From Vitrella brassicaformis CCMP3155 (lineage: Eukaryota; Protista; Chromerida): 64,000 bases of DNA. Position 1 is the stretch's first letter. The number at the start of each line of letters is the position of its first letter. Position numbers and translations under genes: made by a program. Shown one piece after another: positions 39,309 through 61,300 of this stretch. Under the pieces are notes generated by a model. The model did not search any database. It saw nothing but the letters and a program-made list of their open reading frames with translations, and had not been told where the DNA came from. The DNA lies in the NCBI GenBank assembly GCA_001179505.1, contig CDMY01000040.1:141155-205154 (forward strand). The letters run 5' to 3'.

Positions 39309-39994
39309 CTATCTTCGCCTCTTGCTCGATCGCCTCTTGGATGTGGCCTTGCGACTGAACTCTGCACAACGGGCAAGATACCCGGAGAGACAGACAGACA
39401 GAGAGAGACGATCTTTATGCGTCTGTATGTTTGTTTGTATGGGATTTGTGTCTTTCATTTCTGACCGTCGTCTTCCTCGGGCACCCACTCCTCATCGCCG
39501 TCGCCGCTCGCCTTGGCCCTCATCCTCTTGTTCTTGGTAGCAGCCTCGACCTCGACCTCGTCCTCGTCGATCGCCTTCTCGAGCGATGTGAGCGCCACGT
39601 GAGGGATGAAAGGAGAGAGGGAGTGAGTGACTGTGCGTGACCTCTGTATTTCGTGTGGATCTACGTACCTGCTGGTAGATGCTTGTCCCGGGCAGGAGCA
39701 CCTGGTCGGCAGCAATGTTATCGAGGGCCTGCAGGGATGATCGCCAGCACAGCCGATATGCATCCTCGGCACCGCCGCCACCACCTCCCGCATGCGGGAC
39801 CCTTCCTCCTCTTGATGTTTCCCTCTCCCCAATAGTCAGCAGCTTTTCCGCCACATCAGGAGGGCACGGCAGCTCACACAGCTCGCCCGTCGTGCCACTG
39901 CTGCTCACATCGTCTTCCGTGTCAAGGGTCTCCCCAATGTGGCGTGGATGGACTCTGCCGGATCTCTGTCCAGCAAGGACGCGCAGACTGATCT
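39309..39994 (-). pseudogene. Hypothetical gene with acidic/basic C-terminus and no visible start (5' end abuts the duplicated block)
   Basis: Exons ...ELCELPCPPDVAEKLLTIGERETSR...DAYRLCWRSSLQALDNIAADQ, EKAIDEDEVEVEAATKNKRMRAKASGDGDEEWVPEEDD|EFSRKATSKRRSSKRRR* (TAG 39309-39311). The frame is open into 39995 and beyond without its own ATG. Confidence 0.45.
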
Positions 39995-42900
39995 CAAGCT
40001 CGCAGTTGCAGACAATGAGCTCCGCAAATCTTGTGTGTTTTTGTGAAGTGGAGGTCGCCGAGAGGCAAGAAAACTCAGGCCCACATCTCGGCTGCGACCG
40101 GCAGCAGCTGAGCAAAGAGGCCCCACAAGCGCGGCCGAGCGACGAGGGAGGAGGTGCTGCAGAGGGCAAGAGTGGCCGGCGCCCGGAACCATTCGACGAA
40201 GAAGACGATGAGTGTCACGGAATCGTCGGAAAGCAGCCTGGCAAGCAGCCGAGCATTTGCACCAGCCACGGGAGCGGTGAAAATTGGCCGCCTGAATCGC
40301 CTGGATCGCCGACAGATGGGCATGATGTGGACGAGCGGGGCGAGTGGAGGACAGAGGCGAGGAAGCGTAAAGAGATGGTTGCTCATTTCCACGAGGGGGC
40401 AGGCAGCAAGTTGGCGGCCTACGAAGAGTTTCCCAGTACCCTTCGATACGAGACGCGAGTCAACGACAGCGGGGAGGTCGAAGAGAAGCTTGTCGGGATA
40501 GCGTTCACTCCCGAGCCTTTCATCAACACTGCACGGAGAGTCGCTCGTGTCCTTTTCTTTCAACTTGCAACTGCATTGGTCTTTGCAATCGCATGGGCGC
40601 TCTTCTGTCTGGGTAAGACAAAGCCAACTTCACATGCAAGGAAAGAAGATGTATCTGGACGGATGCCATCATGACTGTGCGTTTATGTAAGGTTGCTGGC
40701 CGATGTGTGAGTACAAGAGCTTCAGTCGCGGGGTGCCGTGGATAGTACTTGATTTCCTTCGTGTGCTGCTTATCTATGTTGAGTATACCGCCGCCGCACT
40801 CCTAATGGCCGAAGGGGATGGAAGACTAGCTTTGCGACGCCTTGTCTCGTGCGGGTGGATTTTTGTGCCTGGCGGACTCTTTTTGTTTTCAAGGGCGGTG
40901 GTGCACCACTTTTTCGGAGGATTCAGAGTCCTATACAGAACTTACGTGACGCCCCCCGCGGCGTTTGTCGTCACCTTCCCTTTGGCGTTCATCTTCTTTC
41001 GCTTCAGCGCCCACAGGAATAAGACCGTTATGCGGCACAGGAAGATGATCTATTCCTCCCAGCTGACGGTGATATTTTCTTCACAACTGTCACTCGCAAT
41101 CGTCATGTAAGTAAATGCCGATATCAACATTCGATGTTGGCCTGCCTTTTGTCTTTCTCCGTCAGCCGAATATTTCTCCTCCCCCTGGCCACGGGAGACA
41201 CGACCGATGGGGAGCGGACACGAGTTGCATTCGGTTTCCTACTGATCACGTGGCCATTCCTTGGACTAGGTACGTTTGTTATGAGATGATGCTGATGTGG
41301 CCGCGACTGCCTAGCCGTTCTTACCAATCAGTGACGGCCACCAATCGGGCTATTCGGGACGGATCAGCACTGCAGACAGCACCATGTCTCGCCTTTGGGG
41401 CTGTTGCGCATGCTTTGTTTCCTCGCATGTAAGCAGCGCCCGAGTGAGAGACGAATATACGTGATCCATTGTTCTACAGGCTTCAGTCAAAAATGGCATT
41501 GCTTTCGCCGCATCAAATCCTGACATCTGTCGCTCTCGGGTAAGGTCTGCCTGACATATTGGCCCCTGCCATTCGGTGCTCTGTCCAGGTGCTTCGACCT
41601 TTTTACAGACATCGCGATTCCATATTGTATGCAAGCATCGATATATTGCATTCCAAATCATGTCTCTTCACGATTCTTCTTGCGTGAGCAGGTGTTCTCA
41701 TTGGTGGCGCGAGCAGCAGGCTATTCATACGACTGGTGGCCCGCTTCAAGCCGAACCAAAGGGAGACGCAAGATCAGCACGCCGATGCTGTCGACATTAT
41801 TGCCGTCAGGGATGAGAGCAACAGCGATCGAAAGCCCGGCCCTCGACTGAGTCGTCTTTCCACGAGGGCGGCATCGTACCGCCGCTCGAAGAGTGCGGCA
41901 TTCGATCGCCTCCGCTGCATGTTAAGCCGCTCGTCGCTTGCATCCCACCTGAATACGATACTTGACGCGCAGTCCAAATTCGTGACGTCTGGGTACCATC
42001 CCATGTTCCTTCGTCGACTCAGCGACGTGAGCACTTGAGAGCATATGGGGAAAACAACGACGGGAAGAGCCCTGCATTCCACCCATGTATGTCTCCTCTC
42101 CCTGTTGATTGAGTACAGCAAGTCTATTTGTACGGCCTGGCGGAGCTGACCGCACTGGTACGAACACAGGCAGGGAGGCAGGGAGGCAGGGAGGCAGGGA
42201 GGCAGGTAGGCAGGGAGGCGATGCATCCGTTCTGTCACCTTACTTACAGATCTTCTCCAATTTGTGCTCCATCATCTTCGAACAGGTGCTGTGTGTGGAC
42301 GTGCAGTATGCACACGTGCCTGATATGTGTTTCGTCATGCAGATGTTGTCTCCATCTGGCGAGCGGTTGGCGGAGAGACTGGCCGGCCTGGGGGTCCTTG
42401 TGCTTATCGAGATGAGCCTCGAATTCCTACTCTTCTGCGTGAGCTACATAGCTCTTCATTAAGCCTCAAACACAAGGGCAATTCCATCCATTCACTATCT
42501 GCCTGGGTGTGGCTGGCTGTCTTGTCTTGGTGCGTTGGATGCAGTACATGGTTCGTGTGATCAATTTGCCATTGATCAGGAGCGAGAGGGAGCCGAAGGC
42601 CGTGAGGATGCGACTCATGGGCATGTTCTTCACGGGCAGCATCTGTGTCGTACACGGTGCCTCACACATGGTCATGTTCGTTTTGCAGTCGTTGGACAGA
42701 GAGGCATATGGCAGTGTGGAACTGCGCGACTACTGTCCGCACGACTCTTTCCTCTTGCGGAGACACATGGGGGCATAATTGATTGAAATCAGCCAGCCAG
42801 CCAGCGAGTGAGTGAGATATCCGTATGCCGTGCCGTGCTCGGCTAAGTCAAGAAGCGGCCGGCTGTCGCCAAGGTTTTCATGTCTCATGTAGGTAGGGCT

Positions 42901-47512: not shown

Positions 47513-50500
47513 ATGAATTCCTCACGGATTGTCGTCACCTTGCTTCTCATAGCGCTGGGATCTGTGACGGCCAACAAGGGTCTGCGAGGGCTCCAAGGGG
47601 GAGTGGTGTGTGGTGATGCGGCGGCCGAATGCGATTATGACGACAGTGGCGAATTGGTGTGCGAGGAATGCGACGACGGTCGGGTTCTTTTGCCATGCAT
47701 CGATGAGTCCCATTGAGTCCCGTCATCCGTCACTCACTCATTCATTCATTCGGATGTGGTGCGTGTGTGTCCTGGTGTTCTGCAGGAAACAAACAAACTG
47801 GCGACGGATGCAGCCCTGAATGTACTTACGTATCTGCATTATCATATGTGTGAAGACATATACCTATCATCTACCTGCACGCAGGCACAATCGAGCCCAA
47901 TCATCGTTGCTTCGTCCAGAGAGATCCGTCGCATTGCTGGAGCGTGTCGTGTCCTTGTGAGAGCGTCATGCATATCAAGACCGAACAAGAGGTCGCATTT
48001 GGGGAATTAGAGTCCTATCTCACACACACACACACACACACAGACAGACAGAGACACCATTCACCAAAGTATGTGTTTGGGATGTGTTTGTGTGCATGTA
48101 TCCATGAAGCTGGAGCTCTATTACACCGGCTCGCCCGTTGACAACAAGACACGGACAGCCGCGGATCCCAGTGACTGCGCAGCACAATGCCTGGCCATCG
48201 AGGCGTGCAGAGTGTTTGCGTGGGCCGAGGAACCAGATGAGTTGGTGGAGCCGAAGTGCCATCTATTCAAGGACATGCAAATGTTAAAAGACTGGACGGG
48301 CTACACCTCAGGCACCAAGCTGTGCGCTCCAGGGCCATGTGGTACGTACACAGAGGTTTCTTGGTCAAGTAGATGTGTTTCTACGTATGCGTATGCGTGC
48401 ATACTTTTGTGTGGTGTGGGCATGGTCTGTGTGTTTCTTCAGCCACCACCACCCCTCCGACCACCTCTACAAGCACGTCCACATCCACAGGTAAGTGCGT
48501 ACGGATATCACACGTACGGACTGTCCCCTGTCTGTCTGTCTATCTGTCTGTGTTGCGCTGTCTCTCTACACTTGCCCTTACTGTGACCACAGCTGCGCCC
48601 ACCACCACGACCAAGCCGACTACAAAGACCCCGACGACCACGACGGCCAAGCCCACTGCTCCACCTGCTCAGCCGCCGGCTGAATGTGCCAAGCCGGAGG
48701 GACCCGTGCTCGAGTGGCTCTTTGAAGGCGATGGCGACCAGATCCTCGACACGTCGGGCGCAGGCCATCATGCGCCTATCCATGAGGGCACTCGCATCTT
48801 CGACACTGAGAGAGGCGGCCAAGTGCTGGCGTTGTCGCAGCCCCACAGCTCCATCATTGTGTCCCTCTCGCAAGCGCCGAAAGCTGGCGGGCCCTTCACA
48901 GTCTCATTTTGGCTGTACCCGACCCACTTCGCATACACGTGAAACAATGTAATCACCAAATCCGACTCAGTCTCCACCGACCAGCTAAAGCTTCTGTGTG
49001 GCCTTGTGTCACTTATGCAGTACGTCGGTCCGGGGTGGGGCGTCTTTTTCTTCCGATCGAAGTCTAACGGCGTGATCAACATCGGCACGACGAATGGACA
49101 GCGTTTCACTAAAAAGGAATATGCGCCCGGCCTCGTCGAAGCCGACAAGTGGACGATGGTGACATTCTCGCAAGACGCCGAGGAGCTGTGTCGCCTCTAC
49201 TTTGACGCGGAGCTTATGGGATCGAAGGATATGAATGCGACGGGCGAGTGGACTACCCCTACCCGCTTCAAGCTCAAGAGAGTGGGCGGTCGCATCGATG
49301 ACGTGATGCTGGTCGATCGGCAGCTCAGTGGTGAGGCGGTCATGCAACTGTACCAAGGCTGCCGTATGCCAGCTACCACACCAATACCCAGCACAACAAC
49401 AACGACTCGTAAGCCTGCGACCAGCTCGACCACGAGCACCAGCACAGGTCAGAGACACCATCAATCCACTGGTCCATCGACGGAAACCATGTGACAACAT
49501 GTATAATGCCGTTGTTTGTTCATGGATGTACTCGCTCCTACAACCACAGCTGCGCCCACCACCATGCAACTCACAACCACAGGTGAGTCGCAACGAGCGA
49601 GCAAAGACATGGTTCTGCACCGCATTCTTGAATAAGTGAGCAGTTTCATCAGTTGGTGGCCTTTATTTGTTTCCTCTCATCTGTCCATGCAGCTCCTCCT
49701 ACGACCACAACAACGGCCACAACAAGCACCATCACCACAGGTACGTCAGGTTCCTCTCAGGTAGAAACCATTTTTCTGCGCGCGTTGTGTATATATATGT
49801 ACATTTTTATCTGACTGCCCGTCCAACTACAGCAGCGCCGACCACTACACAGCCAACAACCACAGGTGAGAGAGTCAGGCAGGCTAAAGGCAGCAGTCAG
49901 CCACTTGTGGGGAATCTTGTTTTTCTTCCGTGCGTCGCGTCTGCTTTTCTGTCAGTCGTTCCGTCCACCACGACCACCCTCAAGCCGACCACCAAGCCGA
50001 CCACTCCTCCCACCGAGCCCCTCGATGATTGCGTGCGGCCACCAGGTGCAATCCTTGTGTGGCTCTTCGAAGGAGAAGGAGACGAGATCACCGACAGCTC
50101 TGGGCAGGGGAACCACCCATCGATCGGAGACAGTACCAGAGTGTTCGATGAGGAGAGAGGCGGTCAAGTCCTGTCAGTACGTAAGGGGCACCAGCAGATC
50201 CGTGTGTCGCCCGTGTGGGGCCTTCCGGCAGGACATCCCTTCACAGTCTCGTTCTGGATCAAGGTCTGCTGAATAACCAAACAAGAACACGGGCATGACA
50301 AGGGCATACACATGATCTTGCCTGTCTGTCTCCTTCAGCCGCTCGATTACGTGACAGCATCAAAGGCTAGCAACAGGGACTCAATAGGAGCGTAAGAAAG
50401 GGAGCGGGACAGACGAGTGAACATAAGTTGATCGTTTGTGTGATCCCACGCAGCGGATGGGGCACGTTCCACTTCAGAGGTACACATCACACCCAGACAC

Positions 50501-52981
50501 AGACATACCTGCCAGCATGAATGGTCTCTACTGTAGTCACGTCGGGAATGGGGGGGGGGGCAACGGCATACACGTCGGCATCAAGTAGGCAGCCATGCAT
50601 CAGGATTCAGGAGCATCATCCATCGATTCATTGCATATGCATGCTGCTCTCTTCATCTGCGTGCGTACAGCGATGCGCCCGAGAGATACAATGCGTACGC
50701 ATTACACAGACGGGTTCTCGTGCACTCATTATCGTTGCTTTTCGACGTGTGCAGCGACGAGGCTGGGTACCTCACCCAAGACCAATGGCTGATGTTCACG
50801 TTCAGCTATGACTCAAAGGGCTACGGCCGCCTCTACCGTGACGCCATAGAACAAGGCGCCGACCGGAGAGGACAACTGACCCCTCCTTAGGACTGGGAAT
50901 CGTTCATTCTCAAAAACCATGATTCGTTGCTGGATGACGTCATGCTGTTTGATCGACAACTGAGCGACAAGGAGGTCATGCTGCTCTATCAGGGCTGCGT
51001 GACAGGCCCCACATCGGCTCCGAAAACAACAAGTATGTAGGTGTGTTTGCAGTTTGGCTGCATGCATCGACAAAAGGAAGCAGTCAGTCAGTGTCGGCAG
51101 GAACTCCCTCCCTGGCAATGGCCGTGTTCCTTGATGCTCATTTGTCCATTTCTCTCCCTTTCTCGACCCCTCTCTGTTGTCTGCCTTGTCCTCAGCTCCT
51201 CCCCCAAACACAACGACCACGACAACGACAACCACAAGTATGTCACCAACCGATTCAATTTGCGTTTGTTTGGTGCGTGGGATGGCTGCATCACTTTCGA
51301 ATGTGTGAATTGGTGCAGCTACGCCCGCCCCCACCATAGCGCCGCCTCGTCCCGTCTCGCCTGAAGGGTTGGTGCTCTGGTGGACATTTGACGATGATAA
51401 TTGGCCACCCTCCTTCGACCACACCAACCCGGACACGTACCCTACAGACTGCGTGGTCGAAGTTGGAAAGGAGTAGGCGAATTGTCGGCAGACGAGCTCC
51501 AGGCAGTGGAAATGGACATGAAATGCTCCATGCGTTTGCGCGATGCAGCAACGATCCGGGAAAGGACATACCGGGAGGAGGAAAGTCCGGGTACCCAACC
51601 CCCGAATCGTGTGCAATTGCATGCTACTTGCATGCTACAATAGCCCTCAATGTTACTTCTGGACTCATAAGGACCGAAGCTGCTGGGTGAGTGGAAGGGG
51701 AATCACCGCTCTACAACAACCATTCAAAGGGACATGTCATATCCGTCCGCTTGCCCCGTTATCTCGTCCTTTTGCAGCTCAAGGCGGACCTGAGCGCCGC
51801 TAACACCATCGAAGAAGCCTCTTCTTCCGTCACAACCGGCACTCGACAGTGCGGTATCAATACTGGAAACACCATTGTGGATCAGTCGGGCAACGGCAAC
51901 AGCCCCAACATAACCGGTGTGTATCAGGTGGAAACAGATGGAAACGAATCAGCTCATTGTATGGCGTCATTCCTATGGAAAATCCCAGACACAGGGAGAG
52001 TCACGCGGGTCCCCGTTGGTGAGTCCAACAATATGGCTCTCCGGTTAGAGCGCGGACACGAGGCAGTGAGACTTGATGCCCTAAGTGGATTTGACCACAC
52101 CGAAGCGTTCAGCGGTATACACGCACACATTCATTTCGACATTGTATTCTTTCTCTTTCTGTCCGCACATATGCATACGTACAGTGACCTTTTGGTTCGC
52201 TAGAGGCAGCCGCAATTGTTGCGGTGAAAGAGCGATTGTCGGCCCCGGTGTCTGGAACGAGTTGATGATCAAATACGACTGGGGCGACGGCTTCATCGGC
52301 GGCATCCATCAGCCGATCACAAAGAAGTCCAGCAGCGGGATGATAGACGCGGGCACATGGATGCACGTCGCGGTCACATTCGAAGATGGATACTTGCGTT
52401 ACTATAAGTGAGCGGGGCCGAAAGTACTTTAGGTGACGAAGTACACATCATCAAATACATACTGCCTGCCTGCCTGCCTTTTGCATGCAGGAATGGACAA
52501 GTGCGTGGCCATGCAGGTATTCTAAATTACATTGTGTCGCTAATTGTCCACGTTCATGGCAGACGAAGACCCACCTCAACCCTGGCACGGATTCCACCTC
52601 GCCATGGTCTATGCACCCATGATGCAAGAGAAGAAGCGCACACATACTTTACGTGAAATGAAGATGTAAGAGGACAATCTGTATCTTTCGTTGGCTCACT
52701 TCGTCAGATGGATGGCGGCAAAATTGACGATGTCCGAGTTCATAATCGCCGTCTTCACACTTCAGAGATCCGAGACATCATAGGACTACCACAAGATAAG
52801 ACTCCCTACTACTTGGCCGAAGAGCGATATATTGAGCATGTACGGAATACAGAGCCATCACCTGCTTCTGACAGACATGCCCCTACCATTTGCGCACATA
52901 CATCACTGTGTGTTTGCGCATTCTGGTCTAGAACAATATATGGTCGACGACTGATACTGGCTATTCTTACCTGAGCAAGGG
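47513..52981 (+). pseudogene. Secreted modular adhesin/lectin-like locus: signal peptide, Cys-rich stretch, PAN/Apple, Thr-rich linker, LamG, Thr-rich linker, LamG, PAN, LamG; disabled in its 3' half
   Basis: MNSSRIVVTLLLIALGSVTA; PAN DCAAQCLAIEACRVFAW...KCHLFK; LamG1 WLFEGDGDQILDTSG...FTVSFW...KWTMVTF...IDDVMLVDRQLS; LamG2 WLFEGEGDEITDSSG...FTVSFWIK...LDDVMLFDRQLS; LamG3 IVDQSGNGN...TWMHVAVTF...IDDVRVHNRRL. In-frame TAG at 50888-50890 and an 11-bp tandem duplication at 51617-51638. Confidence 0.8.
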
Positions 52982-53089
52982 GTGAGCGAATGCACGATTC
53001 TCAGGATAAATAAAGGTGTACGTGTCTTTTGTCGTGTCAATATGTCAATAGAACGATCTCCCATTTTCGCGGTCGGTGATCAGCGAGTC

Positions 53090-53167
53090 AAGAGGCCTGC
53101 CTAGAAAGCGAATGAAGGGGCGATAGAGACCAGCCTTATCCATATACTGTCGACTCTGTGTGTGTTA
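53090..53167. repeat. 78-bp inverted repeat, left arm
   Basis: Its reverse complement matches 57078-57155 at 75/78. Confidence 0.93.
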
Positions 53168-53175
53168 TCGAATAG

Positions 53176-54429
53176 GGGCCATGTACTGTTTGATTCTTCG
53201 CGAACGCAAGGGAAAGAGGCGACCAACAATGGTACGTCGGTTGCATGTCGACGAGTGATAGGCATTCGTTTACCACGATTGACCTGAACTTGACTAAATC
53301 TGTATACGCGTCTGTCTTCACAGGTGAAGATTCAAGTTGACGACAAGTGGAACGCCATACATGTGGTCAGACCCGACCTCTGAAAGACCACCAATGAGAG
53401 ATATGCAGACAGTGTTATGTCTCATTCATTGCTTCTTTGGTCAACTCGCACTGTTAGGAGGAGGCATTTGTGGAGCACTTCGGCAATTCCAGTCAATACG
53501 CTGAAGATTATTGGTCGAAACCCGATGACCACCATGAGTGGACCATGGGTATGCTGAGCGTACATACACATGCCTGTGCATGTCACAGGGCATCTTCTAT
53601 GCAGATGTCGACAAAAACGGCTACATTCATGTGGCCGGAGACATGCACAACTTGTGAGCAGACACAGACACAACGGAATAGACACAATCATGTTGGCTTC
53701 TTCCCTCTCTTGTCTTGTCGATGTGCAGCCCCAAGTAAGAGAGTGCGTTTCTTTCTTCATCGCCTACATGTCTCCTTTGATTCTCCTTCGTAAGTCAATA
53801 GAGTTCTCATACCACTTATCCCACTCTGTAGGTACAGCGCGCACAAGAAAGCGGGCTACGGACTGACCAGACCACAGGTGCTTTAAACCCCCGACCTTTC
53901 CATAGCCTAAGCTTGACCAACACTCACAAGTGCGCATCACATGCAGCGCTTCTGGGGGGAAAATGGCGCCGTACGGAGGAAATCCTCATCTAGAGACACA
54001 CACACACACAAAAGCACACACAGAGGGAGAGACAGATGGGAGCACATCTGTTCATACGTTCCTTGCAGACTATCATGTACTGGCGCTCTACTCATCCTGA
54101 AGACATCCACAGAATGAAAGTAAGTGTGAGCGCACCGAGACGGCAAATCACATGGACGCCTGACGCACAGCAGGAGGAGTGTGTGTCTCTGTACATGTCC
54201 CTGTCTGTGGCCCATACAGTTCATGGGCAATGACCCCTCCCGTCGACCTGCTGGCTATGGTAGCGCAACGACCACAGAAGCCGACCTAATTCTGACCCAC
54301 ATTCATGTGTTCGTATCTGTCTGTTTAATGCGCTTGTTTATATGCGTGTGTGTTCGTTCAGGCTACACATATACTTCCTTCTTCAAAGTAGTTTCCTAAA
54401 GAGATGTGGTTTTTCCTCAAGCGTCTATC

Positions 54430-54460
<31 letters not shown>

Positions 54461-55790
54461 ACGATGATGCTTTTTCTTCAAGAGCGTGGACGGCACTCTC
54501 CACTACGGAGGCAGGTTTGACATCTGGAGCAATCCTAAGGACACTCCTCAAAAAAGGTGACCGCACACTCATGATCCATTTATGTGTTGCATGCATCGAT
54601 CCACTTGTGCATGTCGCGTATACCGATTTCGCAGTATATGTGGCACGCTCAGATGGATGGATGCTGGGACATATGAATGCATGCATGTATGAGTGTGTGA
54701 TCATTTAGGTGCCAGAAATCAGCTGGCTTGACACGATATGACACTGAGACACAGTCGTGGGTCGCTCTTGGGGTGAAGCCAAACCCATGTCATTCTTATT
54801 CCGACCACGGCACCATCTGCTATTCCCCGGCAACTGCAGATGCTGTCGCTTACAGCTACTACTGGCAAGCGAGAAATTGGCCATTCCGCCCTCTTTATTT
54901 TGTTGTTCTTCCTACCCATCGATTGCGCACATTTCTGTGGCCGCCTATGTCAGTCCTAGTGGCCATTACACCATCTACCGACCCAGAGTCACATCCGGAC
55001 CTACCAATCCACATGAAATCCACTTTGTTGGTGGGCAAACATCGACAAGAGAAATACAAGTCTTGTACGTCTCTTGAGTCCTTGTCTTGCAGCGAACGTT
55101 CTCGAACCGAGAGGGGTTCGTATGTAACAATCGGCGATATATAAGTGCACATGTGTACTAGTAGTGTATGCTGTTGTATCAGTTTTTCGCTTCGCCGTTT
55201 CCAAACAATCCCTGTGGTCAAACCTTCAGCTCCGAGACCATCTATATGAAATCCACAGATGGAGGTACATATATGTATCGATCTATCTATCTATGCGGAT
55301 CTTGTTCTTCTTTAGGATTGAGCTGGACAAACTACACCGGCCAGCTGATCGCAATGCCTGCCAACCAGACGGCCGGACCACATCAGGCAGACGTCGTTTG
55401 GAGAGCCAACATGGACACGGTCATGGGAGGGTGAGTAAATTGACTGGGTGACTGGCAGTAGCGGCCTACACACGTGCACTCGTGCGTTTTGTCCATTGGA
55501 TGTCTCTGTCTCTCCCTCTGTCTGCCTCTCCCTCAATCAGCACCCAGCCTCTCGTCTCCATTGATTATAGAGGTATGTCTATGCTCGATCAAGTTTTTAT
55601 GTACTGGTGCCTGGATACACGTCTAGCATATATTTTTGCATCCCTTCAGGCCAGCCACTCGTGCAGTCCCCGGGAATAGGCCTTTGCGGTATGAACACCA
55701 TCTCGTCTGAATACATTGCGTCACCTGACTCCGACTTGGTAGGCCACAAGGACGGCAACAAGAAGCACTGGTACCGGTGGTGAGCGGAAA
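53176..55790 (+). CDS. BNR-repeat (BNR_4-like) beta-propeller exons, ulvan-lyase (PL24/PL25)-like; probably the continuation of the PAN/LamG locus
   Basis: Exons KPDDHHEWTM|DVDKNGYIHVAGDMHN, TIMYWRSTHPEDIHRMK|FMGNDPSRRPAGY|GYTYTSFFK|SVDGTLHYGGRFD, GLTRYDTETQSWVALG and WTNYTGQLIAMPANQ. Some exon phases could not be resolved. Confidence 0.6.
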
Positions 55791-56815
55791 GAAATCGGCC
55801 ATTCCATCCTTCCCATTTTGCTGTTCTCATACTCATTACTCGCAGGTATAACAAGGTATGTCTGCGCTCGCTCGTTCGTCTTCTACGTCCGTCTTCCAAA
55901 AGCGGTGCATGTCCGAATGGGCCGTTTAGGACACGGGCGAGTGGCGGGCTGTATCAGGCTTTGCCATGAACGACAAGGACGGTCGGTGTAGACACGAGAT
56001 CGTCGCATCCTGCACGTCCGTGTTTCATCTGCACAGATCATTCTCTGTCTATGAATGTATCGTCTAGGTGTGCTGGGCACGACGTCTCGTTCCTGGATTC
56101 CGCCCGGAAGTGGCATGAGCAGAGAGGTCAGCACAGCGTTCATAGATCCATGTGTGCATTTGTCCCTTTTTATTGTCGGTTTCTTGTTGAAACCCTTGCC
56201 AGACTCGTGAAGCGCATGTCTCCAAGATCGGTTATCTCGCCAAACCCTACCATCTCATTTCAGGTGTGTGTTACATTATGCTGGATCACACGCACACACT
56301 CGTATATGCGCACTGTACTGTACTTGGATACGCACACAGAAAGGCATCATGTAACTGCTTGCAGGCAATCTTCTTGGCGCGACTATGGTAGACGGCCGGT
56401 ATACTGTGCGCATGGTGGAGGTGAGTTGGATGAAAGAAAAAGCAAGAAAAACATACATGTACTGATACTGATGCGTGCGGCCACCAGCTTATTAAGCCTC
56501 CGTTTGACAAACCGGCATTCACCTAATTCTCGAGCCGAGCCTTTTAATAAGCTTTTTGTCATGCTTTCTCTTGATTGCTTTGAAGTAGCCATGATGCGCC
56601 TCGGAGGCTTTCGTACTTGATTTGTTTTGTCTAGCTTTTTGGTTTTGTCTACTTCGGTCGACTTTTAAGATTAGACAGGCAGCCAGGTCCATCACGTTTC
56701 GATCGGTGTTTCCTAACGACACATCATTGATCACCAGTCTGTACCTCTTTCGGCACGTCGTGAAGAAAAGCGGAGATTCATCGAAGCACACCGATTTCTT
56801 TCGTTACCTGTCTAT

Positions 56816-57109
56816 GTGCATGGCGGATGCCGGCTTGCCTCTGAATATTTCTCTCGGTCGATCCGACTCGATCGGCTGCATGCGGTTAGCTGCGGTTTTC
56901 CTCAGGACAGGACACGCACACCTGCAAACGCTGGTTCATGTGCAGCACAGTGCCTGGCAATTGACGCGTGCAGAGCTTTCACGCGGGCCGAGAATGTAGA
57001 CAGATTTTGGATGTCCAAATGCATTCTATTCAAGAACGTGCGGAACGGGGGGAGCTGGCTCAGTGTTATTTCGGCAGTAACACACACAGAGTCGACAGTA
57101 TATGGATAA
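56816..57109 (+). pseudogene. PAN/Apple domain exon, paralogous to the one at ~48110-48330
   Basis: RTRTPANAGSCAAQCLAIDACRAFTRAENVDRFWMSKCILFK aligns with KTRTAADPSDCAAQCLAIEACRVFAWAEEPDELVEPKCHLFK. The ORF ends inside the inverted-repeat arm. Confidence 0.75.
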
Positions 57110-57155
57110 GGCTGGTCTCTACCGCCCCTTCACTCGCTTTCTAGGCAGGTCTCTT
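57078..57155. repeat. 78-bp inverted repeat, right arm
   Basis: Reverse complement of 53090-53167 with 3 mismatches. Confidence 0.93.
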
Positions 57156-57399
57156 CACGCCGATAGTCGCGCAATCATCTACGCATACTCAGAAAAAGAC
57201 AAAAGGCATTCAATGTCATTGCATTGTATGCATGTCAGACAAACGAAGAAGGGTGCACACAGTAGACAGATCTACGACAAATACTGCAGCATGGCAAGAA
57301 ATGGATTGGACTCAATACACACGCACGCACACACACACACACACACACACGAGAGAGAGAGAGAGAGAGAGAGACTCACGGCACGGCCTCAAAGCTCCT

Positions 57400-58375: not shown

Positions 58376-61300
58376 AAGCTCGCAGGGCTCGAAAGGATGC
58401 TCGAAACCCTGCAGACAACACAATGGCTTCCACAGATCTTATGTGTTTTTGTGACGTGGAGGTCGGCGAGAGGCAAGAAAACTCAGGCCCACATCTCGGC
58501 TGTGACCGGCAGCAGCTGAGCGAAGAGGCCCCACAGGGCTTAGCGCGGCCGAGCGACGAGGGCGGAGGTGCTGCAGAGGACAAGAGTGGCCGGCGCCCGG
58601 AACCATTCGACGAAGAAGACGATGAGTGTCACGGAATCGTCGGAAAGCAGCCTGGCAAGCAGCCGAGCATTTGCACCAGCCACGGGAGCGGTGAAAATTG
58701 GCCGCCTGAGTCGCCTGGATCGCCGACAGATGGGCATGATGTGGACGAACGGGGCGAGTGGAGGACAGAGGCGAGGAAGCGTAAAGAGATGGTTGCTCAA
58801 TTCTACGAGGGGGCAGGCAGCAAGTTGGCGGCCTATGAAGAGTTTCCCAGTACCCTTCGATACGAGACGCGAGTCAACGACAGCGGGGAGGTCGAAGAGA
58901 AGCTTGTCGGGATAGCGTTCACTCCCGAGCCCTTCATCAGCACTGCACGGAGAGTCGCTCGTGTCCTTCTCTTTCAACTTGCAACTGCATTGGTCTTTGC
59001 AATCGCATGGGCGCTCTTCTGTCTGGGTAAGACAAGGCCAACTTCACATGCAAGGAAACGAAGATGTATCTGGACGGATGCCATCATGTTTGTGCGTTTA
59101 TGTAAGGTTGCTGGCCGATGTGTGAGTACAAGAGCTTCAGTCGCGGGGTGCCTTGGATAGTACTTGATTTCCTTCGTGTGCTGCTTATCTGTGTCGGGTA
59201 TTTCGCCGCCGCACTCCTAATGGCCGAAGGGGATGGAGGACTGGCTTTGCGACGCTTTGTCTCGTGCTGGCAAATTTTTATGCCTGGCACACTGTTCATG
59301 TTTTCAAGGCCGGTGGTGCACCACTTTTTTGGAGGATTCAGAGTCCTATACAGAACTTACATTGAGCCCCTTGCGGCGTTTGTCGTCAGCTTCCCTTTGG
59401 CGTTCATCTTCTTTCGTTTCAGCGCCCACAGGAATAAGACCGTTGTGCGGCACCGGAAGGTGATCTATTCCCTTCAGCTGACATTGATGTTTTCTATAAA
59501 CGCGTTACTCGGAAGCGCCATGTAAGTGTGTGAAATGCCGATGTCAGCATTCGATGTTCGCCTGCCTTTTGTCTTTCTCCGTCAGCCGAATATTTCTCCT
59601 CCCGCTAGCCACGAGAGACACGACCGATGGGGAGCGGACACGAGTGGTATTCGGTTTCCTGCTGATCATGTGGCCACTCCTCGGATTAGGTACGTTGGTT
59701 CTGAGATGATGCTGATGTGCACGCACATCTCCTTATCCGTTCTTACCAATCAATCAGTGACGGCCACCAATCGGGCTATTCGGGACGGATCAGCACTGCA
59801 GACAGCACCATGTCTCGCGTTTGGGGCTGTTGCGCATGCTTTGTTTCCTCGCATGTAAGCAGCGCCCGAGTGAGAGACGAATATACATGATCCATTGTTC
59901 TACAGGCTTCAGTCAAAAATGGCATTGCTTTCGCCGCATCAAATCCTGACATCTGTCGCTCTCGGGTAAGGTCTGCCTGACATATTGGCCCCTGCCATTC
60001 GGTGCTCTGTCCATTCTTCGAACAGGTGCTTCGACCTCTTGACAGACATCGCGATTCCATATTGTATGCAAGCATCGATATATTGCATTCCAAATCATGT
60101 CTCTTCACGATTCTTCTTGCGTGAGCAGGTGTTCTCATTGGTGGCGCGAGCAGCAGGCTATTTATACGGCTGGTGGCCCGCTGCAAGCCGAACCAAAGGG
60201 AGACGCAAGATCAGCAACCCGATGCTGTTGACATTATTGCCGTGAGGGATGAGAGCAACAGCGACCGAAAGCCCGGCCCTTCACTGAGTCGTCTTTCCAC
60301 GAGGGCGGCATCGTACCGCCGTTCGAAGAGTGCGGCATTCGATCGCCTCCGCTGCATGTTCAGCCGCTCGTTGCTTGCATCCCAGCTGAGTACGATACTT
60401 GACGCGCAGTCCAAATTCGTGACGGCAAGGTACCATCCCATGTTCCTTCGTCGACTCAGCGACGTGAGCACTTGAGAGCATATGGGGAAAATCACGACAG
60501 GAAAAGTCATGCATTCCATCCATGTATGTCTCCTCTCGCTGTTGATTGAGTACAGCAAGTCCATTTGTACGGCCTGGCGGAGCTGACCGCACTGGTACGA
60601 ACACAGGCAGGGAGGGAGGCAGGGAGGGAGAGAGGTGATGCATCCGTCCTGTCACCTACTTACAGATCTTCTCCAATTTGTGCTCCATCATCTTCGAACA
60701 GGTGCTGTGAGTGGACGTGCAGTATGCACACGTGCCTGATATGTTTTTCGTCATGCAGATTTTGTCTCCATCTGGCGAGCGCTTGGCGGAGAGACTGGCT
60801 GGCCTGGGGGTCCTTGTGCTTATCGAGATGAGCCTCGAATTTCTGCTCTTCTGCGTGAGCTACATAGCTCTTCATTAAGCCTCAAAGATAAGGACAATTC
60901 CATTCACTCACTATCTGCCTGGGTGTGGCTGGCTGTCTTGTCTTGGTACGTTGGATGTAGTACATGGTTCGTGTGATCAATTTGCCATTGATCAGGAGCG
61001 AGAGGGAGCCGAAAGCCGTGAGGATGCGACTTACGGGCATGTTCTTCTCGGGCAGCATCTGTGTCATACACGGCGCTTCAAACATGGTCGTGTTCGTTTT
61101 GCAGTCGTTGGACAGAGAGGCATATGGCAGCGTGGAACTGCGCGACTACTGTCCGCACGACTCTTTCCTCTTGCGGAGACACGTGGGGGCATAATTGCTT
61201 GAAATCAGCCAGCCAGCCGTGCTGTGCTCTGCCAAGACAAGAAGCGGCCGGCTGTCGCCAAGGTTTACATGTCTCAGGTAGGTAGGGCTGATTTTGGCGA

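Follow-up and report, generated by a model that had tools for sequence, protein, structure and literature searches.

An intron-split BNR_4 beta-propeller with lyase-type residues, nearest to PL42, in the chromerid alga Vitrella brassicaformis

Does a chromerid alga encode a polysaccharide lyase (PL), and if so, which glycan would the enzyme cut? BNR_4 beta-propellers, the fold of the lyase families PL42, PL24 and PL25, have so far been described in bacteria and in a small number of fungi. Vitrella brassicaformis is an alga living with corals, and a chromerid copy would extend the BNR_4 family to the photosynthetic relatives of apicomplexans. The question is raised by a 64,000-nucleotide stretch of the genome of strain CCMP3155 (contig CDMY01000040.1; hereafter the window, in whose coordinates all positions are given), where an intron-split propeller resembling bacterial ulvan lyases was proposed at 53176-55790 from the nucleotide letters. 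Our favoured reading, held with moderate confidence, is that 52.8-56.4 kb encodes a complete, seven-bladed BNR_4 propeller of ~470 residues, divided among ~21 exons and forming part of a secreted LamG/PAN protein that is likely to act as a uronate lyase. The novelty lies in the alveolate member, as the family itself already has a eukaryotic representative in Fusarium (FoRham1); in the literature we found no paper on a BNR_4 lyase-family member from a chromerid or any other alveolate.

A BNR_4 propeller split by introns

The + strand at 52.8-57.2 kb consists of many short open stretches lying between AG and GT, as expected of eukaryotic DNA. A collection of bacterial and archaeal genomes was scanned with a degenerate DNA pattern for [DN]H-x7-D-x2-G-x-[ILV]H[ILV]-x-G-x2-H, which returned 120 loci, ~20 of them with motifs plainly related to the window (e.g. 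VDKNGYIHLMGDMHN on an Aquimarina contig and DDHHNFSIGVDSQGYLHVAGNMH in Tateyamaria omphalii). All ten of the loci scanned against Pfam were BNR_4 (E 1e-12 to 1e-80), and a search started from one of these ten contributed another 89 proteins, each of them annotated as PF15892. A profile was made of 110 proteins, all but three of which are on record, or were scanned here, as PF15892. Run against the stop-free segments of both strands at 52.8-57.2 kb, this profile matched four + strand segments at E 9e-8 to 1e-3, with DNA order following profile order, while the best match on the minus strand reached only E 5.5. At the level of single exons (Table 1), E4 scored 25.4 bits (E 1.5e-7), E13 18.4 bits (E 2e-5), E6 13.9 bits and E10 12.6 bits, compared to a maximum of 1.7 bits among 460 shuffled exons. 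The exons closely track the aligned family consensus (DnHryysiavDraGyIHVsGdMHs / pvkYwrSkkPeDIssf / FfrdpdGeLfw / lsvYDektktWtmlg / vlYAySdDgGkt / GspiqlPiraeagpnqgdvv). The peptides on which the original prediction was built were all recovered on the + strand where it had placed them, and its central claim, an intron-split BNR_4 (PF15892) propeller in a eukaryotic gene, is borne out by the profile scores and the exon order.

The closest relatives, identical in loop lengths to the exon chain, form a group otherwise known only from marine or environmental bacteria, referred to here as the long-loop clade, which carries an 18-residue loop after the second conserved His together with shared insertions. 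It comprises P0098 (BNR_4 with PA14, metagenome-assembled genome GCA_964518335.1), L086 (Pontiellaceae B12227), L093 (Tateyamaria omphalii) and five metagenomic loci (L123-L127). A profile of eight long-loop proteins places E3, E4, E6, E7, E8, E10, E12 and E13 in strict order with contiguous junctions; E10 scores 18.3 bits over its residues 3-49, and E3 4.2 bits at profile positions 115-130, immediately ahead of E4. Independent support for the middle of the model comes from ungapped alignment with P0098, L086 and L093, which retraces the exon chain exactly, down to how long E5, E7 and E16 are. E4 is identical to P0098 residues 115-129 at 12 of 15 positions, E6 to both P0098 146-162 and L086 391-407 at 9 of 17, and E7, contiguous with the E6 match, to P0098 163-175 at 6 of 13; none of 300 shuffles scored as high for E6 or for E7. 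Between the E4 and E6 matches, E5 exactly fills P0098 130-145 and L086 375-390, the 16-residue gap in each being accounted for by the 15 residues of E5 and one split codon. The eight residues of E8 find their best ungapped matches at L086 422-429 and L093 322-329, exactly the sites predicted from the chain, and E8-E9 fit the pattern T-Y-x2-F-x5-G-x-L-x4-R ungapped, with P0098 Y179 and R195 coinciding. Further downstream, E12 gives a weak colinear profile match aligned to YAySdDgG. The Asp-box motif SxDxGxxW is present as STDGGLSW, split by the E12/E13 intron and aligned to the family's YAYSDDGGKT, and E13 continues with AGPHQADVV (family consensus AEAGPHQxDVV). The YR...W stretch around the microexon E16 spans ten residues, the same as Y361...W371 of P0098, and at the other end of the domain the E1/E2 junction (RRPTM/VKI) resembles, by eye, RRPQITKI of P0098.

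The complete model comprises 23 exons (52657-57109) whose phase is kept across all 22 junctions up to a TAA at 57107-09; all acceptors are AG and all donors GT, except for one GC after 54864. Together the propeller exons come to 456 codons, as many as a full-length BNR_4 propeller has, and the frame is open throughout the chain, which lends no support to the earlier hint that this copy is not intact. The span first proposed lies within the domain, and the propeller extends beyond it on both sides, from ~52790 to 56420. For the first exon in that span (53176-53231) the frame has been corrected: the reading GHVLFDSS... breaks the phase and was rejected, while AMYCLILRERKGKRRPTM is the sole frame that both keeps phase and matches the family. 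Alternative acceptors for E6 at 54026 and 54032 were likewise rejected, given their poor context and the fit of E5 to the bacterial loop length. E10 has no GT donor in the required phase, and ending it at the GT after 54772 was rejected as this breaks the phase with E11 and lowers the profile score. Neither E11 nor E14-E20 have a significant match to the BNR_4 profile; EIHFVGG in E11 was matched to the invariant His of the family (P0006 H284) only by eye.

With a G+C content of 0.49-0.50, the propeller region (52001-56000, exons and introns alike) lies below the rest of the window (0.52-0.64). Microsatellites of the (GTCT)n and (CA)n type occur within the introns (e.g. at 54430-54460 and 53996-54012). 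The E1/E2 intron contains, on the + strand in another frame, a stretch STSDRHSFTTID (53245-53290) weakly similar to the family's sDnHryysia (E 6.4), which may be a chance resemblance or the relic of a duplicated exon.

Catalytic-type residues and the nearest characterised families

In the alignment of the 110 bacterial proteins the first His is present in 109 of 110 rows (the remaining row has a gap), and both His residues occur in every aligned sequence but one. The third conserved column holds Tyr or Phe, and the column 16 positions later holds Arg in two thirds of members. The residues combine in two main ways: 67 proteins are of the HHYR type, and ~38 have both His with Phe and a residue other than Arg. 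As Tyr and Arg are kept together or lost together, they appear to work as a functional pair. In the ~38 proteins of the second type, Phe stands for Tyr and Gln, Val, Ala or Met for Arg (L056/P0006 is of the Phe/Met type), with both His nearly invariant; this suggests a subclade in which lyase function may have been changed or lost.

The Vitrella propeller is of the HHYR type, as the original prediction had held, with all four residues falling exactly on the conserved family columns; they correspond to H108, H128, Y179 and R195 of P0098. When the family profile is aligned to BT3686, a Bacteroides GH145 protein, these columns fall on DAH, DHH, TYP and YRS. His90 and His110 of BT3686 have been equated with His85 (the base/acid) and His105 of FoRham1, and the neutralising Arg166 of FoRham1 is conserved in GH145 (PMC8377490); the equivalence to Tyr150 of FoRham1 was read from the BT3686 alignment. 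By alignment, not by fold, the anterior tetrad of PL42 (FoRham1 H85, H105, Y150, R166) is therefore present, and so is the PL25 set His123, His143, Tyr188 and Arg204.

The two His are 20 residues apart across AG/GT-bounded exons, and Tyr and Arg 16 apart, in agreement with the spacings originally proposed. These do match PL25 (H123/H143, Y188/R204; PMC13193363). However, both spacings recur in FoRham1 (H85/H105, Y150/R166; PMC8377490), and since they are common to PL42 and PL25 they do not discriminate for ulvan lyases. In PL24, His146 and His167 are 21 apart, with Tyr243/Arg259 as the second pair. The distance from the second His to Tyr is 51 here, compared to 45 in PL25, because of the long loop.

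Two alignments were compared with solved structures. A 63-sequence profile of the nearest bacterial relatives (A1) ranked Bacteroides GH145/PL42 structures first (7.8e-40 for 5muk to 5.6e-36), followed by FoRham1 (7esk, 5e-18), PL24 (~1e-12) and PL25 (4.7e-10). The four-sequence long-loop alignment (A2) matched 5muk (GH145/PL42) at 5e-11 and PL25 (5uam) at 2e-4, with neither PL24 nor FoRham1 at E <= 1; P0098 alone had no match among PDB chains at E <= 1. The AlphaFold model of P0098 (predicted local distance difference test, pLDDT, 86.6) was closest in fold to PL42 (template modelling score by target 0.67-0.71), then to PL24, PL25, and finally sialidases and PLL lectins. PL25 thus falls below PL42 with A1, with A2 and by fold, and below PL24 with A1 and by fold. 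In addition, Asn122 and Lys125 of PL25, which bind ulvan (PMC13193363), are replaced by Asp and Glu at positions -1 and +2 of the catalytic His (D-H-H-E), a comparison anchored on that His and not on a direct alignment to 5UAM.

Taken together, the ranking of PL42 first and the acidic residues next to the catalytic His do not support the PL24/PL25 ulvan-lyase label of the original prediction, and "ulvan-lyase-like" goes beyond the evidence. Judging by these comparisons, the domain is a lyase-type BNR_4 propeller of an uncharacterised clade, nearest to PL42. That it is nevertheless a true ulvan lyase of the PL24/PL25 type we regard as very improbable: the fold, the catalytic set, the PL25 spacings and the A2 match to 5uam all speak for it, but PL42/GH145 leads both profile searches and the fold search, the Asp/Glu replacement is a charge reversal right beside the catalytic His, and no exon directly matches PL24 or PL25 chains. 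The correction has practical weight, as an ulvan-only assay would probably miss the activity.

The ranking also raises the possibility of a retaining alpha-L-rhamnosidase of GH145 type working on the posterior face of the propeller, given that the closest solved structures to the relatives are Bacteroides GH145 proteins. We rejected this reading, to which we assign a negligible probability: the position of the posterior catalytic nucleophile, His48 of BT3686, is occupied by Lys (codon 53012-14, before the conserved Gly of a G-x-x-Y strand), and by Lys, Asn or Gln in related bacterial proteins.

Gene architecture, origin and proposed function

Exon Em1 holds the C-terminal strand of the third LamG repeat (IDDVRVHNRRLHTSEI) and, further along the same exon, the propeller start (KTPYYLAEERYIEH, assigned by eye against the family N-terminus). 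LamG and propeller are therefore fused. The LamG repeats, separated by Thr/Pro-rich linkers, are supported by a Laminin_G_3 match (E 3.2e-7, 31.1 bits, cut-off 27.6) in the upstream LamG region, by weak Laminin_G_3 matches on 52193-52408 and 52657-52848, and by tblastn with the LamG part of P0099, a bacterial relative. The last exon encodes a PAN-like domain whose CAAQCLAIDAC is a paralogue of CAAQCLAIEAC in the N-terminal PAN motif. We suggest that 47.5-57.1 kb is probably a single gene for one secreted protein, composed of signal peptide, PAN, three LamG repeats, BNR_4 propeller and a second PAN, in which the probable start codon and signal peptide at 47513 would be joined to the downstream exons.

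Binding modules are also found beside the propeller in bacterial relatives (PA14, CBM96, PKD, DUF1349 and, in P0099, Laminin_G_3). P0099 combines BNR_4 with Laminin_G_3 plus CBM6 and CBM35-type domains, while L123 (1115-3214) and L125 (1375-3405) combine it with DUF1349. The pairing of the propeller with concanavalin-A-like modules thus recurs outside the alga, in another domain order. The P0098 gene is surrounded by genes of glycan degradation, among them SASA, GH42 and GH172 and one for a heparinase II/III-like protein that also carries an FGE-sulfatase domain.

A horizontal origin of the propeller is plausible because every relative detected is bacterial, mostly marine or of the PVC group (Planctomycetes, Verrucomicrobia, Chlamydiae). 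The best Vitrella exons are 50-80% identical to bacterial relatives and the rest far less so, with no single bacterial sequence closest. The dense introns and eukaryote-type architecture indicate that the transfer, if there was any, would be old, and nothing in the sequence is suggestive of a recent one.

As to mechanism, the most likely one would be beta-elimination at a 4-linked uronic acid, in which Arg would neutralise the carboxylate, His would abstract H-5, and His or Tyr would protonate the leaving O-4. The anterior-pocket tetrad would provide the chemistry of PL42, PL25 and PL24 (a His acting as base/acid, a second, helper His 20 positions further on, and Tyr and Arg 16 apart), with the LamG and PAN modules holding the enzyme on a glycan surface. 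The full catalytic set together with these modules would point to an extracellular glycan-cleaving or glycan-holding activity, and a substrate resembling rhamnose-glucuronic acid is more likely than ulvan.

Several observations weigh against the uronate-lyase reading as a whole. The exon chain was read from genomic DNA only, and the spliced model was searched exon by exon. Its weakest junction is the GC donor, one exon (E16) has only 10 nt (55846-55855), and E0-E2 and E14-E20 were placed by eye only. Pfam hmmscan of single exons gave one BNR_4 match, at E 0.082 for E4 (VDKNGYIHVAGDMHN), single-exon PDB searches returned chance matches only, no exon matching a solved structure, and the 83-residue E12-E13 piece had no true match at E <= 0.001 among 1.84 billion cluster representatives, five spurious matches of repeat or thioredoxin type being all that this exhaustive search returned. 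On the functional side, the long-loop clade has no characterised member, Bacteroides GH145 proteins with the same anterior residues had no detectable lyase activity (PMC8377490), and wall analysis of the sister alga Chromera velia listed neutral sugars only, with little rhamnose and no uronic acid (PMC9293442). No endogenous substrate is thus evident from the Chromera wall, the Vitrella wall not having been analysed there.

Standard searches are uninformative on single exons because these are too short. Neither a related-locus search with one exon, nor tblastn against plasmids, nor a word-index search of proteins with a stop-free piece of two exons found anything, an Atlas feature search gave no usable match, and hhalign of single exons against A1 cross-matched between blades and was uninformative. 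The absence of the E12-E13 protein from the cluster representatives indicates that the modelled gene is not represented in that collection.

The weaknesses of the gene model could be interpreted as signs that the gene is decaying or not expressed, the remains of an ancient transfer with a frame that is open partly because of how the splice sites were chosen: one donor has to be GC, one exon has only 10 nt, searches of large collections found no matching protein, and the stop codon is supplied by an inverted repeat (see below). We consider this improbable, as 22 consecutive junctions are phase-compatible with canonical dinucleotides in all but one, there is no in-frame stop, the loop lengths are exactly those of the bacterial relatives and all catalytic residues are intact.

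PAN-domain proteins act as surface adhesins in related parasites. A non-catalytic, lectin-like propeller, which would only bind glycans and, with the PAN and LamG modules, contribute to an adhesin at the surface, is a more serious rival, though in our view still an unlikely one. All of the flanking modules are binding modules, the lack of lyase activity in GH145 proteins fits such a role, and seven-bladed PLL lectins are among the more distant fold matches of the P0098 model. Against it stands the retention in Vitrella of all four catalytic-type residues, although Tyr and Arg are jointly missing from a third of the bacterial relatives; one would not expect a domain that only binds to preserve the whole set.

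We retain a uronate lyase as the preferred reading. Its most specific form, which we offer tentatively as a doubtful proposal, is that of the first alveolate long-loop BNR_4 lyase, of ancient bacterial origin, intronised and set in a PAN-LamG x3-propeller-PAN adhesin scaffold, which would cut, outside the cell, a uronic-acid glycan other than ulvan or gum arabic. The substrate of such an extracellular lyase could be the mucus of corals, an exopolymer of bacteria, or some minor polymer of the wall that is cleaved when the sporangium opens. If true, the long-loop clade would represent a new specificity among lyases, or else a CAZy family or subfamily of its own; its bacterial members are singled out here as a target for enzymology.

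Two repeats were seen at the locus. The arms of an 81-nt inverted repeat (95% complementary, 3.9 kb apart, two copies only in the window, similarity stopping at the arm ends) bracket nearly the whole propeller and the C-terminal PAN exon; the repeat has no Rfam match, and no copy was found in a scan of a metagenome collection. Two + strand open reading frames, 39679-40674 and 58423-59160, share ~200 near-identical residues (...ERQENSGPHLGCDRQQLS...RKEMVA.F.EGAGSKLAAYEEFPSTLRYETRVNDSGEVEEKLVGIAFTPEPF...), such that a duplicated gene lies on both flanks of the PAN-LamG-BNR_4 locus; the 245-residue flanking product had no exact match among called genes on record.

Table 1. Coordinates of modules, exons, repeats and peptides at the propeller locus (positions in the window)
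Feature	Position	Strand	Remarks
Probable start codon and signal peptide, MNSSRIVVTLLLIALGSVTA...	47513-47575	+	ATG 47513, hydrophobic core, then acidic Cys-rich stretch
N-terminal PAN/Apple domain	~48110-48330	+	PAN_1 E 6.6e-6, 26.3 bits (cut-off 21.4), on 48011-48583
Three LamG/concanavalin-A-like repeats	48690-52790	+	approx. 48.69-49.44, 49.90-51.02, 51.36-52.79 kb
Em1	52657-52839	+	GT donor after 52839, phase 0; upstream limit approximate
E0	52976-53015	+	last full codon Lys 53012-14
Inverted-repeat arm 1, 81 nt	53087-53167		inside E0/E1 intron
E1	53176-53231	+	frame AMYCLILRERKGKRRPTM; phase kept
E2	53324-53365	+	AG/GT, phase 0 to 0
E3	53458-53548	+	first catalytic-type His, codon 53530-32; equivalent to FoRham1 H85, PL25 H123
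Peptide DDHHEWTM	53524-53547	+	read from window
E4	53605-53653	+	second His, codon 53646-48; equivalent to FoRham1 H105, PL25 H143
Peptide VDKNGYIHVAGDMHN	53607-53651	+	preceding D = split codon, 53548 plus 53605-06
E5	53832-53877	+	15-residue loop specific to long-loop clade
E6	54069-54119	+	IMYWRS..PEDI
Peptide YWRSTHPEDI	54078-54107	+	read from window
E7	54220-54259	+	AG/GT-bounded
E8	54362-54387	+	catalytic-type Tyr, codon 54370-72; equivalent to FoRham1 Y150, PL25 Y188
Peptide TYTSFFK	54367-54387	+	read from window
E9	54483-54556	+	Arg, codon 54513-15; equivalent to FoRham1 R166, PL25 R204, the charge neutraliser
Peptide SVDGTLHYGGR	54483-54515	+	read from window
E10	54709-54864	+	LTRYDTETQSWVALG...; GC donor at end
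Peptide YDTETQSW	54737-54760	+	read from window
E11	54960-55059	+	phase kept
E12	55183-55264	+	first Asp-box half, S-T-D-G 55252-55263
E13	55316-55430	+	second Asp-box half, G-L-S-W 55316-55326, then AGPHQADVV
Peptide WTNYTGQLIAMP	55324-55359	+	read from window
E14-E20, last propeller blades	55541-56420	+	AG/GT, phases kept; placed by eye and spacing
E14	55541-55572	+	
E15	55650-55779	+	
E16	55846-55855	+	
E17	55930-55981	+	
E18	56068-56126	+	
E19	56203-56263	+	
E20	56365-56420	+	
E21, C-terminal PAN-like domain and stop	56906-57109	+	PAN_1 E 0.007; acceptor phase 0; TAA 57107-09
Inverted-repeat arm 2, 81 nt	57078-57158		supplies the gene's last ten codons and stop

Comparison with known systems

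The closest likeness is to the long-loop bacterial proteins, which share with Vitrella the motifs DDHH..VDKNGYIHV.GDMHN, IMYWRS..P.DI and G.G(F/Y)TY..FF...G.L....R, and identical spacings from the second His to Tyr (51), from Trp to Tyr (29) and within YR...W (10). They differ in being bacterial and intronless and in carrying PA14, PKD or DUF1349, whereas the Vitrella propeller is accompanied by three LamG repeats and PAN; identity to them is put at no more than ~35-55% even for the best exons, and some of them also lack Tyr or Arg.

Among characterised enzymes, PL42 (FoRham1, 7ESK; BT3686, 5MUK/5MUL) shares with the Vitrella domain the Pfam family BNR_4, seven blades, the Asp-box and the anterior His/His 20 and Tyr/Arg 16 residues apart. 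FoRham1 is the L-rhamnose-alpha-1,4-D-glucuronate lyase of Fusarium oxysporum, so that the family was already present in a eukaryote. In FoRham1, Y26, N275, Q276, R331, E381, Y202 and R220 are the residues of the Rha and GlcA subsites. What sets the Vitrella domain apart from PL42 is its place in a separate clade, marked by additional insertions besides the 18-residue loop that follows the second His, its fusion to LamG and PAN modules and its dense introns; compared to BT3686, it has Lys in place of the posterior His48.

The ulvan lyases PL25 (PLSV_3936, 5UAM) and PL24 (LOR_107, 6BYP) have the same fold and the same His/His/Tyr/Arg logic (PMC13193363, PMC8377490). They rank below PL42 in every comparison, and the Zn ligand of PL25, His208 at Arg+4, is by position Trp in Vitrella. 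Unlike the Vitrella gene, they are endolytic enzymes of bacterial ulvan-utilisation loci.

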